64,000 bases of DNA from Zygnema circumcarinatum SAG 698-1b (Eukaryota; Plantae; Zygnematophyceae): assembly GCA_037447605.1 (NCBI GenBank), contig CM074811.1, positions 1,550,001-1,614,000 on the forward strand. Reading direction: 5' to 3'. Position 1 is the first letter of the stretch. Each line of letters starts with the position of its first letter. A program made the position numbers and the translations under genes. This document shows, piece after piece, positions 5,529 through 63,727 of this stretch. The notes under the pieces were generated by a model. The model saw only the letters and a list, made by a program, of their open reading frames with translations, was not told the origin of the DNA and did not search any database.

Positions 5529-8500
5529 TCATTGGCCTGCTATCTCGTTGTCATCAGACTTCGCCACCGATTCCTCTTTCTTCTCTAATCTCGCTGAAGC
5601 GTAGTCCATCAAAACGCTTTCTTTTTGTTGGGGATCTGCAGAGACTTCCTCCTTTCCATCTGCAAGCTCCTCTGACGGCTCGGATGCTTGTTCTGAAGGC
5701 ACCTTCTCATTTGCGCCAGTCACTTGTGAATCCATATCTTCCTGGTTCTGTTTACCAATCCGTATAATGCTGGGCCCACCAATTCTCAATTTCAATAGCT
5801 CACTCCTCCATGCCAAGATTAGTCTCCCTTTTTTGTCTATCGCCTCATAGAAGGTTTGCCCTCCCTTCTTTGTGGGAAAGGGTACCTTTGCATCCGGAGG
5901 TGCTTCGAGGGAGCCGATGTAAACCAGGCAAAGTCCGTTACCCAGCTGCATCTTCTTCCATTTCCCTCTAGTTGCAATGACGAGGCCTTGTCCAACTAGT
6001 TCTCCATCCGCGTCCAACACCTCCACTTCATCTTCTCTTCTTAGCCTATTTCCTCTGTCCGCATGTTCTGACTTAGATGACCCTTTGGCGCTTGTTGCAC
6101 TTTCCCGAAACCTGCTCCTGCCCTTGCCTTCTCCGTTTGAACCCTCTTCATGCTCCACGTCTTCACACTCCATCCCTGCCTTAACCTTCCCAGTACCCTC
6201 CTCTGCCTTCCCTTCCAGGTCATCGTCATCCTCCTCCTCGGACTCATCTTCCTTATCTTCACTTTCGTCCTCCTGTCCTTCACCTCCACTTTGCTCCTCG
6301 CCTCCCCCTTCACCCTCCAACGAATCCTCCTCACCAGAGTCATGGTTACCATTCTCATCCTTGTCCTTTTCATCCCCTACTTGCTGCTCCTTCCTTATTT
6401 CTCCTGCCTTCTTCACAAACCCTTTTCCTTCTATGCCATCCAGCTCTCCTTCACCTTCTTCCTCCTCGAGGTCCCCATCCTCCTCTCGGCCACCTCCATC
6501 AACTTCATCCTCACCCTCTACCTCTTCCTCCGATTCCTCACTGTCTCCTTCTTCTGCCCCATCACCATCAAACTGTCGCTGGTCCAAATGCTTCAATACG
6601 CTGTCCTCGTCTCTCCCACTCTCGTTTCCTGCTGCATCCAGTTGTCCCTCAGGTCCACTTTGCACAATCCCGGCCCTCACTCTCTCCCCAGGAGGTACCT
6701 TCCTTTTCTTCTTTCTGAGACTTGCGTCGGCTCCTGCAGTCTCCTCTCCCTTTTCTGGTGTAGTCCTTGGCCTCCTTCGTTTGGCAGGAAGTACGGGAGG
6801 AGCCAATACAGTCTCTCGTCGAACCGCTCTACTAGCTACTGGCCTCCGGCCTCTGTGCTTGTGATTGTTGATCCTGAACAGATACCGAATCGAGAGAAAC
6901 ATTTAAAACGGCACAAGGTTCTGTAGAAACATACAACTAGAGTGCATACGGGACAAATCGTGTTGACAAACTAGGACAGCCCTGCCTCACAGACACAAGG
7001 ATTTATGTCTTAAAACACCTCGTCCAAAACATTCATTGAAAGCTTGTGTTCTTCGGATGGGTGCCTACAAACTTGTGTGCTTTTTCACATGATCAAAACA
7101 GCAAGATACAGATAACACGAGGACAGAGAAAACGAACCAAACACTGTATCTGAGAGTGTCATGGAACAGTCCAAACTATGGGACAAAAAACAAAAAATAA
7201 TCATCAGCATTAATGCCCCAAAAAGACCTCACCGAGGGAACACCAGTCGGGTCATATCAACGGACTAACTCTAAAAGAGCCAGGAATCAAGTTCCTTACC
7301 AGTTTTTCAGTTGAGTGATCGATATTCTTGATCCCTGCATAAGCATGAGCCATAATCAGCTGCATCAGGAGAAGAATAATCTCCTCCCAACAGGCCATTG
7401 ACATGCACAACAACAGCATAAGAAAGGGGACTACTGAACACCCTTCGATCCTAGCAGAAGCATTGTAGTAAAGCTTGGAAAGGCATGCAACTAGTTCTGC
7501 CATGCACAATTGATGGAGTCCTTACCTGGACCATGTCATTAAGCACATTCACCCACTGCTGCAGAAGTTCTGGAAACCGATGCATGTCGGGTTCCTCCCT
7601 GAGGGCCTCTTCCATGGCATCCGCTTGATCTTCAGTCATAATCCTCCGTCTGGCAACCCGTACCTTATCGTCGATTCCAGGCAGAGGACCTTGTTTTGAC
7701 ATTTTACTTGGCACTTCCTGTGCATCGTCCCTTGCTACCTCGTCGTCGCCTTCCCCTCTCTTTCTTCTTCCAACACTCTTCAGTCTTGCTTCGCCTTCCT
7801 CCGCATCACTCACCTCCACTCCATCCCCGATATCATCCTCTACCCCCTTTCCACTAATACTATCAAGAGCCTTCACTTTCCCTCGAGAACGAACCCTGTC
7901 AACAACCCTCTTCTGAGCTCGCTTACCGCTTGTCCATTTTCGCCGAACCTTTTTCCTTGGGCGATTTCCCCAGCCGTGTGTTCCCCCAGAAGGAACCTCC
8001 CGTTTCACCTTTTTCAGTTTCCTTTCCATTGTCTCATCCTCCTCATCCGTCATCCCTCTCTTTTGACTCCCACCAGACTCACCATCATCCTCTCCTTGTT
8101 TCCCTTCACTCTCGCTCTCGCTCCCTTTTCCATCATCCCTCTCGTAAAGCTGAAGGGTCTGTTCTTTCGGTAATTTCTTCATCCTCGTCTTCTGGCGTGA
8201 TCGGATATTACCCTCACCTTCTACATCCGATGCACCTTGTTGTTCTCCTGACTGTTCCACGCTCTGAAGGTCATCCTTACTCTGCCTTTCTATAAGAGTT
8301 CCTCCTGTCATTTCTTTACCCAGAATTTTCTGTTCCACAGACTTTTTACGAGCTTCTGAGACAGGTTTGCCCAATTTGATGCTTTTTCCACCTTGGTTGC
8401 GTGTAGCCTTGCCACTTCTATAATCTTCTCCCTTGAGCTTCTTATTCCCAGTTTGTTTCAAGGAAGTAGACTTCATATGCTCTTGAGAAGCTCCTTTCCT

Positions 8501-11500
8501 GGACCTCCTCGGCCAACTCCCACCCCTCACACGTTCCCAGGAAGAACCCTTTCCTCCTTCCACACCATTCTCATCTCTGGATTTGCCCATCCCCATGAAC
8601 CCTGCCTTTCTCGAATGAAGTCCTTCATCCTGCGGTTGGCGCCTTCCAAAACCCCTTGCCGGAGAGCCACCAACCTCATTGGCTTCTTTACCATTCATCC
8701 GTCTGCTTGCCCCCGGGCCCCCCTCCTGCTTGAACTCGCCCTCTGCAAAAGTTGCCATAAGGCGCTGCCAGCGAGGCTGCTGCTCCCTGCGGGACTGCCA
8801 CTGATGGAGGTTCTGCTCATGCGCATCAAGGATGGAGGCCTCTTGAGAGTGGTCCTGGAGTCAACAAGACCAGCAGTTTGTCAAATCAGCATTTTTCTAC
8901 ACAGCAGAGGAGGTATTTATGAAAAACGAAACTAGATGTAAAAGAAGTGGGTCCATCGGTGCAAACTTTGAATCTTTTGTCAAGGTGGCGTCAGCTCCTT
9001 TCTGACCAGCCTACTTGGAAATTTTACAACCATTTCTCTAAATTCATTGTATTTTAGAACCGGCCGCACAACCTCCATAACTGTGATTCTATAAAAGGAC
9101 GGTGATTACGTGGAGAAACTGTCACTTTCAATACTCCTTTGTCAGAAAGTAATGCGTAGCCACTAGGGAGAGCGTTAACTCGAAAGTAAACAAAAAAATG
9201 GTCTCTCCGAATCACACACTGTCATTCACAATCCCCTGATGCATGTTGACTACACATTTAATGCGGCTAATTGACATATACTACATGAAGTTAACTTAGA
9301 ATCCGGTTGTCTTCAAAAGCACTCGACAAAAAAGAGCGTTGAGCCTCACAGTCGTTGACGAGCAAGAGTCTTTCAATCCGCTGTGGGAACAGATCGCGCC
9401 ATGAAGTGCTTCAGAAAAACGGCTGCAAGACCATGTCCCGTTCACATGGTCACCTCAAGGAATGACAAACTTAACCTAGCTACTAATGCTTTGACGAACT
9501 CTATCATTAAAAAGGTGAACACAATTGCCATAAAATCTGCCATTGACCCCACAACGAAGAGGTGTACTTCCACGTGGAAATGCAGCAATCACTGAGAATT
9601 GCGTGACCTTAGCACCCTCTCCCTTCCAGGACTGCTCAATTCAAAAGGTACTCAACGTCCAACTTTGCTTTCCGCAGCTTTGCTCATCAGTGGCCCGCTA
9701 AGGCATGTTAAAAATATAAGTCTGAGGCAAAGAGGGGATGACGAGAGCATCATGAAGCACCTGACAAGGTAAATATCGTCGTTAGCAACCTTATCCTCCG
9801 GAAGAGACATCACGAACTCCACTAACAGATCTGCACAGCATGCATCCTTCGATTTCGTCAAACAAACCGATCTAACTAATTTTTGCTGACTTGTTTGACG
9901 AAAGTGGTAATAGTAAGTATTGTGGGATGTGGACTGTCCAGTGTTCAAAAGCTGGTATATCCTCTGTGTAATACTTCAAAGCTGCGACAAATTAGCTCAG
10001 ACTACGAGTTGGTTACATGAACAGGTACTCGTCGTTGCAAAATGAAGACTCGGTTCGGCAGGAAAAAGCATTGAGCCAAAGCATACAGAAAACTGAGGGC
10101 AGGACAAGAGTGTGATGCTGAAGAAAGGAACCATATAACCTTTCATCCGAACTGCTTGTATGACACTTCAAGTACTTTCAGGACAATTTCAGATGCAACA
10201 ACTTACAAAGGTTCTCACAGATGCGGACTGCAGTGCGTGCTCGAGACTGGATAAAGCATTGATGATCGGGCAGCAGCGGGCCAACTTTAAGACAATCGAT
10301 GAAGTTTTTCAAAAACTGGTCCCTCGTCTCTGTTTCCACACCAAGTTCAAGCTAAATGAAACGCAAACTAATCGAGTACGAACTGAAACAATGAAGGACC
10401 CACTCATGCGGCAAATTACCTTGTTTTTTTTAAATTGGGAAGGGAAAAACCACAAACCTTCAGCTGTCCTTCGACAGGAATGATTACACTAAAACACATA
10501 AGGAGCACTTCCTACACAAGTATCGAGAAAAATCCTCTGCATGATTCAGGAGCGAACACTTTGTAACAAAGGCTATTTTTCATCCACCTGTTTGCAAGAA
10601 CTACATCAAAGCTGGGACTGAAGAGAAATGGATTAACTTACCTGATGTTACGTAGGGATTATAACAAAGAAGGTTTCCAAACAAATGCACCAGCAGGGAA
10701 GCCATCTCATGCACATGAGCCTCCTCTGCCATCTTTTCCGGCTTCAAATGCACTGGCGCTTCCGCATCATCTGCTCCGGGTACTTTGTTAATCAAATCCA
10801 AAACCGATATCTTCACCTCCTGATCGTCTCCCGCCTTCTTCACTTCGTCGTGAAACTCTTCCCATTTCTCCTTCAGTTGGAACACAGCACCCAATGCATG
10901 AAAAGGTCTATACACAACAAATGCATCGGCCTCTTTTCTCGCCCGCCCTCGAGCCACTTCGCCTCCTAACCAGTGCGAGACAAACTCTGCAGGGGGAGCT
11001 GCGAGCATCTCAGCCAAGCACGGGGTCTGCAAGAGGAAACAAGGGCAAGTCAGCTGCATACAAGGAAGGTTGACAAGGAATGGTCAACAGAAAAGTTTTA
11101 AGCCAGCTAATATGTACTCACTACTGCCTGGACCTTGTTAAGACTTCAAAATTCCAGATTCCACGAGTTCGGAGCTCGCATCATGTCTAGACAAACGAGT
11201 CAAAACGGTGTGGATAAACAAGATCCAAGCGGTAGTAAGCCAGCCGAGAAAGTCTTCTACAAAGACACAAACCCTTAGTGTACATACATCGGTGCATGCA
11301 AACCCTCGGTACACACAGCGTCGCATTTGAGGAATTTAAAAATATTGAAGATGCACTGTTAACTTCCATTGACCGGTTTCTGACATGTTGCTTTGAATAA
11401 GCAACATGTCAGCTGAAAGCTGTTAATAAAGACATTCCTCACATCACATGTGCATGTAATAACTTTCTTATCAGAAAGAGAGCTATTCCTTATACTTCCT

Positions 11501-17184: not shown

Positions 17185-17238
17185 CCAATCAGGGATTGCC
17201 ATGTTGGCACACCATCTGACGTGGCAGACTGAGATTGG
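17185..17238. promoter_or_regulatory. 54-bp inverted CCAAT/CCAC module, copy 1
   Basis: ccaatcagggattgccatgttggcacaccatctgacgtggcagactgagattgg, lying between the NDX and translin starts. Same length and motif positions as copies at 28631, 49394 and 52598. Confidence 0.7.
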
Positions 17239-28630: not shown

Positions 28631-28684
28631 CCAATCACGACGCGCCACATCGGCACTGTGTCCTGCGTGGCAGGCTCCGATTGG
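28631..28684. promoter_or_regulatory. 54-bp inverted CCAAT/CCAC module, copy 2
   Basis: ccaatcacgacgcgccacatcggcactgtgtcctgcgtggcaggctccgattgg, about 110 bp upstream of the EamA gene. Confidence 0.7.
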
Positions 28685-49393: not shown

Positions 49394-49447
49394 CCAATCA
49401 AACCGCGCCACGTCGGATAAAAGTGCTACGTGGCACGCGTTGATTGG
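49394..49447. promoter_or_regulatory. 54-bp inverted CCAAT/CCAC module, copy 3
   Basis: ccaatcaaaccgcgccacgtcggataaaagtgctacgtggcacgcgttgattgg: two exact CCAAT-N9-CCACG elements facing each other, about 260 bp upstream of the ankyrin gene ATG. Confidence 0.75.
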
Positions 49448-59847: not shown

Positions 59848-60827
59848 AGCACACTATGCATCTGAACGCTCCTGCCATTATAATTCCTTTCTATCAAACT
59901 GACAAGTGGAAATCGCTGCTTTGGGAGTACAGGGGGATCCAGACAGATGGCATAGTGCTTCTTCTCGGGAGCTCGTCAAATATTGGAAGACTGCGATTGC
60001 TGACATGCAGTAGGTGCGTCAGCGGGTCGTGCTTGGGATGCAATATCAATGCAGGCAAATTATAAGTGTACTCTCCATTCCTCATTTTTCTGGTGTGGGT
60101 TCGGTTCTATGTCTGCTTCCTTCAGACTGAGTGATTATCTGCTGCAAAAGGCTGCTTTCAACTGGCGTTTCCTTCCGTGGAATATCTGCACTGCATGCAG
60201 ATATCACCAAAAGCCATCTTCGTGTGTGAAGGTGGCTGTAAGAAATTGCTCTTTTCTTTTGTGCATTGCAGCAGCTGCGGTGCTCAAAAAGTCTGTGTCA
60301 GATTTGCTTCCCACCTGACTAGTGGAGGCGGAAGGTTTCGTGCAAACACTTTGTAAAGTAAACAGATGATTAGCGGAGGATGAGTTTATGTTGCATTCTT
60401 ATGTGTAACTTTATCCTGCATTAGGAAACGTTTTAATCTGACTTCTGTCAATGATGGTTGAACAAATGATGTGATTAGAATTTCGTGGTAATGAAATATT
60501 CACACAAAGGCTAGTACGTGCTACACAATTAAATTTTTTCATACTTCCAAGTTTTTTTTCATTTTAAAAGCGTCACATGTACAAACTCGACATGTGAGTA
60601 AATGACATGTGTGCCTCATTTAATTATTCACAATCTCTCTTAAAAGTATATCTGCGACCTAAATGCCTGGGCCAATTGTCCTGCCTAGGCCCCCCACTAG
60701 GTCCACGGAGCCAAACTCTCTTGACTTCCGATCTTAAAGAAAAATCAAGGACCATGGCTTTGTAACACCCTTAGTTTGCTGCCCCTTACATGGTCCCTCC
60801 AAGAAAGCCTCTCCTTATCTTGCCGCC

Positions 60828-61764
60828 TTACACGGTCCCTCCAAAAGCAGCCGATGCGGCCACTGCCAGGAGGATGAAAGCGGCGGATTGGAAGGCGCTC
60901 ACAAAGCCCGCCCCTCGGCTGCTGGCATTTGCCGGCACTGCAGACCCGTCCGTTGCGCGTGATGGGGTGTTGGGAGTCACATTGGGAATCCCATTGGCGG
61001 TGGGAGGGTCTTCGGATGGAGGAGAAGGTTCCGAGGGATCCTCCAACATAGGTGGGGCTGGAGCAGGAGCGACTGGGGGCGCAGGCGCTGCAGAGGAAAA
61101 ACAGACGTGAAAAGGGACAGATGACACAAAGGGAGGGTGGAATTAGTGCGCGAGTGATTAATCTGAATGATTATAAGCCAGTTCTATGCGCTTCAGGCAG
61201 CCAGAGTTGATGAGCATTTAAAAGAAACCCTTTTCGAACTAAAAAATCCAAACTGCGTGTTTCGGCGTTAGAACGAGCAGGTCTACGAGCTATATTGCTC
61301 GCTAAGCTACGCAAAAAAAAGATCCACAGCTTGCCTAATGCAGGAGATAGAAGCTTACGAGGGCTGGGGCACTGAGAATTTCCCGCAAGCTGGAGCTGCG
61401 TGTTGGGGATCCCACAGAGGCGCGAGGAGAGCGAGGCGAAGGTAGCGGGGGTGATGTTGTAGTACGAGTTGCTGTAGAAAGCGCAAAGGCAGAGGTTGTT
61501 GTTGGCGTTCAGCACAGAGGCGCAGCACGACACGGCCGTGATCGGGTTTGTGCTTCCCGATGTCAGATATCCTCCACATGCATTCGCCGCCGAGAGGATG
61601 ATCGAATTGCAGTCAGGTGAGTCGGGAGGGGGGGGGGGAGCGGTGGGGCTGACGGGCTGATTGGGAACCTGTGTGTTAGGCAGGAACTGCGCAGCAGACG
61701 GCGCAGAGAGCGCCAGAAGTGCCGCGCACACTAAGGAGAGAATGGCTGCGGCCTTGCACGCCAT
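60828..61764 (-). CDS. Secreted 8-cysteine-motif nsLTP-like protein with Pro-rich/AGP-like regions and probable GPI signal (LTPG/xylogen-like), copy A
   Basis: Signal peptide MACKAAAILSLVCAALLALSAPSAA; C-X10-C-X16-CC-X10-CLC-X22-C-X14-C; exons 61764-61359 and 61087-60828; Pro/Ala-rich linker and hydrophobic tail (ASSRGAGFVSAFQSAAFILLAVAASAAFGGTV*). Confidence 0.9.
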
Positions 61765-62171
61765 GGCTGCGTCGTGAGAGCAAAAGGCGGAGGAGCGGTG
61801 CAAGCAGCTGCTAGATCGCCGGCGCTGTGCAGTTCAGGCTGTTGTGGACTCTGCCAAAAGCGGTCGAAGCGCGCGCCATTTAACTGCCACTGCGCGCCGA
61901 AAATTTGAATGTCTCGCGAGGCGCGGCGGCCCCGCCGAGGCGGCGAGTGACTGCGACAGCGCGCCGTGGGCGGCGCCGCTCGCCCGCTCTCCGGAGGAGG
62001 CAGAGACGGAGGAGGATCTGACGGGCCTCTGCCGCCGCCCCATATCATGGGGGCTTCGGAGAGAGCAGGAAAAGCAAGCAGAGACGAGGCTAATCAATCA
62101 GCTCAAGTTTGCATCTGTCTACGTAGAGGACTTGAAGTGCTTAATCGCAGAGCTACCAGTGCTTAGCAGCC

Positions 62172-63039
62172 ATGGCATCCGGCAGCTTTGTTGAGTGCGC
62201 AACAGTGGCGGCTACTGCAGTGTTTCTTCTCTCAGCGTGGGCTGTTCTTCCAGCATCCGCCCAGTTCTTTGGGAGCTCGACCCCTGTTCCCGCCCCTGCT
62301 CCTGCCCCAGATGCCCTTTCTCCCTCGACTGAATCCGGCCCGGAATGCAGCGTTCAGCTGTACTACAACTACCGCTCCTGCGCGCCCTACCTCACCACCG
62401 GCTCATCTGTGACGACCGGGGGGGCCACCTGCTGCTCGGGCCTGCTATTGGCCAACCAGAGCGGGTGCCTCTGCAGTCTGGGCGAGGGGGGGGACTCTCT
62501 CCTTTCATTGGACGAAGTGACGAGTATCGCAACCACGGTGTGTGGCTTCCCCATTGGAAGTCTGTTGCTGCCCGGAAACAGCTCCTGCGATGCGCTAGGT
62601 ATGCCTCGGCCCCTTCAAAGAGTGAATTTTCAAGTCTTATGAATTGGATCGGTTTTTTATGCTGCATTTCATCCAGCATTTGCTGCTGCAGTGCACAGGA
62701 GTGCGCAGGGATTGTTGTTTTTATCGGCAAATGGGCTTAAAGACGTGCTGGTCAAGAATAAGTCGAACTAAGTTTTTTCGTGCAAATCTGGGGCTTGTGG
62801 TGTTGCTTGCAGCTCCGTTCGCAGTGATGCCTGCGCCATGGCCCGTTTCAGAGGATCCTCCTTCTCCTCCTGCTCCAGTCGCCATGGCTCCTCCTCCGAG
62901 CCCCGTGGTCGACACGACCCGCGTGGGAGACACCACAGAAGCTTCGAGCGGTGCTCGCCTTTATCTCCCTCTCTGGAAGACGGTTCACTATGTGGCCTAT
63001 ATGGGCATGGCATCTTTTGCCTTCGCTCTAATCTTCTAG
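62172..63039 (+). CDS. Secreted 8-cysteine-motif nsLTP-like protein with Pro-rich/AGP-like regions and probable GPI signal (LTPG/xylogen-like), copy B
   Basis: Signal peptide ..AVFLLSAWAVLPASA; same cysteine spacing as copy A; exons 62172-62598 and 62813-63039; tail ASSGARLYLPLWKTVHYVAYMGMASFAFALIF*. Confidence 0.9.
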
Positions 63040-63727
63040 GATGAGTAATCCATGGGGTTCTTAATGGATTTCGTCCCAGAATATTCGTCTGCTGCCGTGC
63101 CTACCTGCATTGGAGGACATCACATATTCGGCTGGAAATAGGTTTGTTTTAATAGTCGGGTACGAATGTACAGGGTCACTAGTTTTGTGACAGTGCGTTA
63201 TAATGTTTTTACAAGTTTCCGTGGCTTTGAAACTTATAAAAAGAGCTGCTTCTTTCTTCTTCATTCTTGCTGTTGGACGAAATTTGCATTTGATGCATTT
63301 TTCTTTTTCTTCACGAAAAAAATCTTAAATAAGTTGGTTTTCATAATCGTAAGATGCAACGAGCTGCTCACATGTAAAAATAGTCGGCGCGCAATTTACT
63401 GCAAGATGTAAAGTGGAGCGTTGTTTGTGAACCCTCCTTCTTCCAACCGCCCTTTGGGCCGAACACCATTTGCAGTCGCTGGTTCACTTACCAATCGTGC
63501 TAAAAGAGATTGAAAACGAGCCAAAGAAGCCCAAATTAATGATAAAATACCTGCTCAAAAAGCAGCAGAGCCATCTCATCCGGTAAATCTATGTTGCGTA
63601 GCAGCAGCAGAAAATCAATCAATAGCGTGCGAATAAAACTGCCCTGCGCGCCTTAGCTTCCTCAAACCGCAGTAGTGAAGACAGTTACGTTTGCCATACA
63701 TCCTCTGCGGAGAACAAGAGAGACCAC

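Follow-up and report, generated by a model that had tools for sequence, protein, structure and literature searches.

The window analysed here comprises 64,000 nucleotides of contig CM074811.1 of Zygnema circumcarinatum SAG 698-1b (assembly GCA_037447605.1). It contains two divergent two-exon genes, A on the minus and B on the plus strand, whose products resemble the nsLTPs (non-specific lipid transfer proteins) of land plants that are anchored by glycosylphosphatidylinositol (GPI). Gene A occupies positions 60828-61764, with its ATG at 61764 and its stop codon at 60828-60830, and encodes 221 amino acids (aa). Gene B occupies 62172-63039, begins with the ATG at 62172 and encodes 217 aa. The 407 bp between the start codons (61765-62171) accommodate both 5' untranslated regions (UTRs) and the divergent promoter, and the 11-nt start-codon context GCAGCCATGGC is identical in the two genes. 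In each case, exon 1 (61359-61764 in A, 62172-62598 in B) encodes a putative signal peptide, a proline-rich stretch and the entire eight-cysteine LTP_2 domain. Exon 2 (60828-61087 in A, 62813-63039 in B) encodes a linker rich in proline, alanine, serine and threonine, which in A is arabinogalactan-protein-like, followed by a GPI-type signal and the stop codon. The introns, at 61088-61358 in A (271 nt, GTAAGC...TGCAG) and at 62599-62812 in B (214 nt, GTATGC...TTGCAG), are of the GT..AG type, lie in phase 1 and begin 10 nt past the codon of the eighth cysteine (Cys8). A motif scan of the window found eight-cysteine motifs in these two genes alone.

Both genes are transcribed and spliced. We aligned Logan contigs from four public runs of the same organism (X19, X25, X26 and X28) to positions 60600-63300. 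Contigs of X19 and X25 contained the exact joint of gene A (61087/61359; CT..AC on the plus strand, which equals GT..AG on the minus strand), and contigs of X19 and X26 that of gene B (62598/62813, listed as 62596/62811 with the cut displaced by +2). These exact joints fix the ends of both first exons and thus confirm both gene models to the base. Downstream, a gene A transcript contig extended to 60683 and the gene B contigs to about 63175. Upstream, a spliced gene A contig from X25 reached 62103 and a gene B contig from X28 started at 62108, so that the 5' ends nearly abut. This fits a single compact divergent promoter, although the contigs are undirected and the transcripts might therefore overlap. 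The summed contig depth of A and B climbed jointly across the four runs (about 5/4, 13.5/9.6, 25.7/20.5 and 87/101), which, in four runs picked by gene A, is only a hint of co-expression. An initial annotation, made from the DNA sequence alone, had described a head-to-head pair about 400 bp apart, with ATGs at 61764 and 62172, and had inferred a bidirectional promoter common to both genes. That arrangement was confirmed at 407 bp, with spliced contigs behind both models, and divergent transcription from a very small shared region is supported.

The transcript ends showed two further features. In the long 5' UTR of gene A (contigs to 61966-62103), an ATG at 61879 lies upstream of the main start and opens a 22-codon open reading frame (ORF; 61811-61879, minus strand), with 44 nt between its end and the main ATG. 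The longest form of this UTR has another ATG, at 62048, which opens a 105-codon ORF (61731-62048, minus strand) that overlaps the main start. These upstream ORFs suggest possible translational control of gene A. Beyond gene B, a loose contig end from X28 passes from about 63141 on to about 63384 and skips about 63142-63383 (GT..AG on the plus strand), which suggests an intron of roughly 242 nt either in the 3' UTR of gene B or in a neighbouring transcript.

Both precursors carry the same succession of modules. At the N-terminus of each lies a hydrophobic leader, which according to hydropathy and the -3/-1 rule ends in an AXA-type site: SAA followed by QF after 25 aa in A (about 61690-61764), and ASA followed by QF after 30 aa in B (about 62172-62261). 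A proline-rich stretch of 26-28 residues separates the leader from the eight-cysteine motif (8CM). Within this stretch of gene B, X19 has C instead of T at position 62319, which changes Ser50 to Pro and is probably a strain difference. The 8CM (61369-61611 in A, 62346-62588 in B) measures 81 residues in both proteins, with all eight cysteines present, a spacing of 10/16/0/10/1/22/14 and leucine within the CXC element (CLC). An alignment of the two domains needs no gaps and shows 30% identity (E 1e-11), the linkers resist alignment, and the sequences indicate that A and B are old paralogues.

After Cys8, the linker, 60 residues long in A and 49 in B, consists of proline, alanine, serine and threonine to 61-68% and contains 6-8 (A/S/T)-P dipeptides. 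In a test for arabinogalactan (AG) glycomotifs, the segments adjoining the LTP_2 domain had a content of these four residues of 58-68% and 3-8 such dipeptides each, which qualifies both proteins as xylogen-like. In the C-terminal signals (about 60831-60920 in A, about 62947-63036 in B), small-residue sites precede the hydrophobic tail (ASS-R-G-A-G in A, ASS-G-A in B). A rule-based GPI scan placed small residues at both the omega and the omega+2 position, with S192-R-G or G194-A-G as the candidate site in A and S188-G-A in B, and detected a spacer of 9-12 residues, 12 in the case of B. The hydrophobic end itself comprises 16 residues in A and 15 in B, is uncharged and stops at the C-terminus or at most 4 residues from it. 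Named angiosperm GPI-anchored LTPs gave the same pattern with the same script. The precursors have pI values of 4.2 (A) and 4.1 (B).

We then assessed family membership by sequence and profile searches. Both proteins scored above the gathering cut-off of the Pfam family LTP_2 (PF14368; 30.6 bits for A and 22.6 bits for B, cut-off 22). Tryp_alpha_amyl stayed below its cut-off, and the Pfam scan found no match to Hydrophob_seed (PF14547) in either protein. Since both proteins pass the LTP_2 cut-off and align with each other gaplessly at the E value given above, the 8CM resemblance is not a matter of chance. Profile-profile comparison of the pair with ten angiosperm LTPG domains (hhalign) gave a probability of 96.7% (E 3.1e-10), and by language-model features exon 1 of gene A was nearest to LTP_2 clusters (0.87, 186 shared features). 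When 1.84 billion representatives were searched exhaustively by profile, four matches came back, three of them angiosperm multi-domain LTPGs and the fourth a spurious bacterial repeat protein. The angiosperm proteins, from Turnera, Camellia and Nymphaea, comprise 2 to 5 LTPG-type domains with proline-rich linkers and GPI-type tails, and the one from Nymphaea carries the name 'Non-specific lipid transfer protein GPI-anchored 2'. Neither an algal match nor a self-match was found among these representatives. Exon 1 of gene A, and likewise both first exons aligned (E up to 10), gave blank results in word-indexed protein searches, the protein libraries, which cover Klebsormidium nitens too, contained no close relative, and a metagenome scan revealed no relatives. 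A sequence search of the PDB yielded titin matches only, which we discarded as chance.

AlphaFold2 models, built from a shallow alignment, were helical. The model of A (pLDDT 65.5, pTM 0.52) has four helices, and that of B (pLDDT 67.3, pTM 0.53) has five DSSP segments. Among the Swiss-Prot models, Arabidopsis LTPG29, 23, 11, 16, 9 and 21 matched A best (TM-score about 0.55 relative to the query, highest probability 0.97). The best re-aligned PDB matches of A were nsLTP1 allergens with Z scores of 5.1-5.7, headed by Cor a 8, lentil LTP and Pun g 1; 2S albumins and the hydrophobic protein of soybean came next. For B, every named cluster among the best 30 in AFDB was an LTP or a bifunctional inhibitor (six had no name), and a Foldseek-independent search of 48,161 PDB chains ranked wheat nsLTP2 (Z 5.3, 65 of 67 residues, 2.6 Å) first, with lentil LTP1 and DIR1 in second and third place. 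Though weak singly, these scores taken as a whole assign the domain to the nsLTP/prolamin fold with moderate confidence.

With the type G LTPs (LTPg) and xylogen-like arabinogalactan proteins (AGPs) of land plants, such as Arabidopsis LTPG1-34 and AtXYP1/2 or Physcomitrium PpLTPg2/8, A and B have in common a predicted leader, one LTP_2 8CM, the linker with AG motifs, a predicted GPI-type signal and the hydrophobic residue in CXC. LTPg proteins are also their best matches in sequence, profile and structure. As in LTPg, a single intron past the Cys8 codon parts a domain exon from an anchor exon. By the Edstam criteria, which PMC9832785 restates, the land-plant plan consists of one intron after the Cys8 codon, whose distance from that codon varies in type G and is 4 nt in type D; both genes have this one downstream intron, confirmed by contigs. 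Type D proteins (LTPd, for example DIR1, which is among the top three structural matches of B) have no GPI signal, whereas A and B combine an intron at 10 nt with a GPI-type signal in the spliced product.

Other traits set the pair apart from LTPg. A and B carry an extra proline-rich stretch between signal peptide and the first cysteine, their identity to land-plant LTPg domains is about 25-35%, and two such genes were found within the 64-kb window versus about 4-34 LTPg genes per land-plant genome. The cysteine spacing differs as well. Our reference were the LTP domains of xylogen-like AGPs in Tables S7/S8 of a 2025 study (PMC12209756; bryophyte rows and part of the rest), which span 12 hornworts, Marchantia, Physcomitrium, lycophytes, ferns, gymnosperms and angiosperms. 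In these rows, C1-C2 is 9 almost without exception, C4-C5 is in most cases 12 and in none 10, C6-C7 ranges from 21 to 29 and C7-C8 from 6 to 12. Compared with the typical type G pattern of 9/14-17/12/21-29/6-12, the 10/16/10/22/14 of A and B is nearer to a few 'G/D' patterns in the same rows (10/17/9/22/7-9). The missing PF14547 match and the linker and GPI-type tail that follow the 8CM speak against an identity as hybrid proline-rich proteins (HyPRPs), in which a proline-rich N-terminal domain precedes a Hydrophob_seed-type 8CM that is C-terminal with nothing beyond it.

Among green algae, Huang et al. 2023 (PMC9832785) reported 29 nsLTPs in 13 species, with 2 in K. nitens and none in Chara or Chlorokybus. 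A and B resemble these proteins (KnLTP1/2, CrLTP1/2 and groups AI/AII) in their algal host, adjacent paralogues and low pI, in precursors that measure about 20 kDa and extend beyond the 8CM, and in a proline-rich N-terminal region. The number of genes, one or two per genome, is alike too, with two found in the window. Leucine in CXC is common to A, B, the KnLTPs and AII, and a single intron also occurs in KnLTP1. CrLTP1 and CrLTP2 are adjacent, 579 bp apart and arranged head to tail, whereas A and B lie head to head. Compared by description, A and B do not fit the K. nitens proteins in length and pI (KnLTP1 has 24+205 aa and a pI of 7.5; KnLTP2 has 3 introns). Chlorophyte nsLTPs look unlike those of land plants and have several introns inside the 8CM. 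We ruled out the chlorophyte AI/AII lineage, since A and B have neither the extended C2-C3 nor the extended C1-C2/C6-C7 spacing and keep the whole 8CM in one exon. Taking layout, exon plan and spacing together, A and B therefore share the LTPg layout and exon plan, miss the LTPg spacing and are not of the AI/AII kind. For Chlamydomonas LTPs, fatty-acid binding and late-zygote expression were shown (PMC9832785). PredGPI is named in the methods of that study, and the text available gives no GPI result on algal proteins.

We conclude that A and B are probably a pair of secreted, GPI-type members of the nsLTP family, likely tethered at the plasma membrane and driven by one very short divergent promoter region. 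Sequence evidence lends good support to the LTPG-like molecular reading, and structural evidence moderate support. Each protein would enter the endoplasmic reticulum by its signal peptide. The 8CM is predicted to form a bundle of four helices that is locked by disulfides and contains a hydrophobic pocket, and the leucine in CXC suggests the disulfide pattern of LTP2, LTPd and LTPg. On either side of the 8CM, the stretches rich in proline, alanine, serine and threonine are probably hydroxylated and O-glycosylated like AGP modules. The C-terminal signal is probably swapped for a GPI anchor, which would tether the domain to the outer side of the plasma membrane. So placed, it would bind and pass on hydrophobic molecules at the interface of membrane and wall. 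Anchoring, glycosylation and lipid binding are inferred, and the putative cargo might feed a hydrophobic wall layer such as a resistant spore wall.

This conclusion agrees with the initial annotation, which had read the pair as LTPG/xylogen-like proteins. The nsLTP domain was recovered by Pfam, profile-profile and fold searches. The type-G layout is borne out by the features already listed there (signal peptide, mature QF start, proline-rich segment, complete 8CM with leucine in CXC, linker rich in proline, alanine and serine, and a tail after SS-G/R), with leader and GPI signal recognised by rules. Of the checks proposed there, the profile search placed LTP_2 above and Tryp_alpha_amyl below their cut-offs, and the structural check with AlphaFold and Foldseek gave helical models and, in Foldseek as in VIA-align, match lists led by nsLTPs, with modest scores.

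Several observations weigh against our conclusion. The calls of leader and GPI signal are rule-based, and the GPI spacer of gene B is long and partly hydrophobic. The acidic pI is unlike that of classical basic nsLTPs, and the cysteine spacing lies outside the range of the embryophyte types G and G/D compared (C4-C5 10, C7-C8 14). No single-domain LTP was significant in the large protein searches. Confidence in the models is moderate, and Foldseek E values of 0.01-1, Z scores of about 5 and TM-scores of about 0.55-0.62 are weak singly. The neighbours in the window (NDX homeobox, EamA transporter, GT2, CAP-Gly and ankyrin) include no lipid-pathway gene near the pair. Finally, in two runs the sole assembled form of gene A retains its intron and would be anchor-less.

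The proline-rich segments with AG-type dipeptides on both sides of the 8CM would also suit proteins with a mainly wall-structural, adhesive or signalling role. A and B would then be chimeric AGPs or hydroxyproline-rich glycoproteins of a xylogen-like or HyPRP-like kind, with the 8CM as a stable scaffold and not as a lipid carrier for a barrier polymer. Proline-rich N-terminal stretches are also found in HyPRPs and in Chlamydomonas LTPs (PMC9832785), land-plant xylogen-like AGPs function in signalling according to PMC12209756, and the absence of lipid genes near the pair in the window points the same way. However, Pfam matched LTP_2 and not Hydrophob_seed, the fold matches are lipid-binding nsLTPs, and CrLTP2, which has a similar proline-rich leader, binds C20-C24 fatty acids (PMC9832785). 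We consider a mainly structural or signalling role possible but somewhat unlikely; it and the role as a lipid carrier do not exclude each other.

The transcripts of gene A bear on the presence of the anchor. In X26 and X28, the sole assembled form of gene A kept the whole intron (contig 61069-62003 with a depth of 87 in X26, contig 61107-61966 with a depth of 26 in X28). X19 contained the spliced form only, and X25 both spliced and unspliced forms. Because the depth over the gene B intron and over the flanks was at or near zero in X26 and X28, and because gene B was spliced in X26, genomic DNA does not explain the retention in gene A. The retained intron leaves the frame open for 62 codons and leads to a 197-aa product that lacks the linker and the anchor signal and would be LTPd-like. 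Read-through into the gene B intron meets a stop after 14 codons, which results in 156 aa. Exact look-ups of both read-through products found nothing on record. The retention, which appears to be run-specific, could be a switch between an anchored and a soluble form or merely unproductive splicing, and the contigs do not quantify it.

If such soluble forms prevailed, or if the hydrophobic end were a membrane-spanning tail anchor or part of a cleaved propeptide, A and B would belong to the nsLTP family but have no GPI anchor. This would be in line with the rule-based nature of the GPI call, the gene B spacer and the unspliced gene A contigs of X26 and X28, where the gene B intron was absent. 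On the other hand, the tails are uncharged, end at or within 4 residues of the C-terminus and lie behind triplets of small residues at the usual distance, a pattern that the named angiosperm LTPGs match exactly under the same scoring, and spliced forms are present for both genes. We therefore regard nsLTP-family proteins without a GPI anchor as unlikely. That the stretch comes from an embryophyte, for example from a compact bryophyte genome, and encodes ordinary land-plant LTPGs is very improbable: NDX homeobox and LTP_2 domains are both known in land plants, and hornworts have 1-2 xylogen-like genes per genome, but the cysteine spacing is unlike that in the 12 hornwort genomes, Marchantia, Physcomitrium and the lycophyte, fern and seed-plant domains compared, and no land-plant single-domain LTP came near enough to score in the protein searches.

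The reading of A and B as GPI-type nsLTPs touches on the origin of this family. In reviews up to 2016-2018 (PMC5052319, PMC5874595) and in the 2025 study of xylogen-like AGPs (PMC12209756), nsLTP domains were held to be restricted to land plants, and scenarios for the evolution of cuticle and AGPs were built on this restriction. The initial annotation likewise started from nsLTPs as a land-plant innovation, a premise that is out of date because of the green-algal nsLTPs in Huang et al. 2023 (PMC9832785). Its further proposal of an ancestral extracellular lipid-barrier system is speculation, with no lipid-related neighbour genes in the window, and its evolutionary framing is only partly novel. 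As nsLTPs in green algae are known from the 2023 study, what is new here is the G-type, xylogen-like layout in an alga, together with an intron that follows the land-plant plan at 10 nt after the Cys8 codon. The cysteine spacing beyond the embryophyte range compared, the abutting divergent transcripts and the apparently run-specific intron retention in gene A are new as well. A search of the literature library found no later paper on GPI-type LTPs of streptophyte algae.

According to the 2025 proposal in PMC12209756, all G-type nsLTPs started as chimeric AGPs. With its land-plant exon plan, its leucine in CXC, linkers of the AG type and tails of the GPI type, the transcribed pair described here bears on this hypothesis, and if the anchoring is true, the origin of G-type LTPs would shift to before the embryophytes. 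One might go further and place A and B at the stem of LTPd and LTPg. A GPI-anchored, AGP-chimeric design made of an 8CM exon and a linker/anchor exon would then predate life on land, and regulated intron retention, by giving a G-like or a D-like product, would offer a plausible route to the D/G split; we consider this scenario improbable at present. Two genes found in the window and one promoter also make for a system of low redundancy, in which the role of anchored LTPs at a cuticle-free cell surface could be tested.

Elsewhere in the window, two long ORFs at 5529-8758 (minus strand) contain Nodulin_C and HTH_NDX domains. They probably represent exons of a single homeobox gene of the NDX class, which marks streptophytes. 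Scanning the whole window for Rfam families and tRNAs gave no hits. The dyad CCAAT-N9-CCACG is absent from the shared promoter region at 61765-62171, and at no more than one mismatch it occurs 12 times in the window versus 3.0 expected. It also forms mirror-image pairs, each spanning 54 bases, at 17185-17238, 28631-28684 and 49394-49447.

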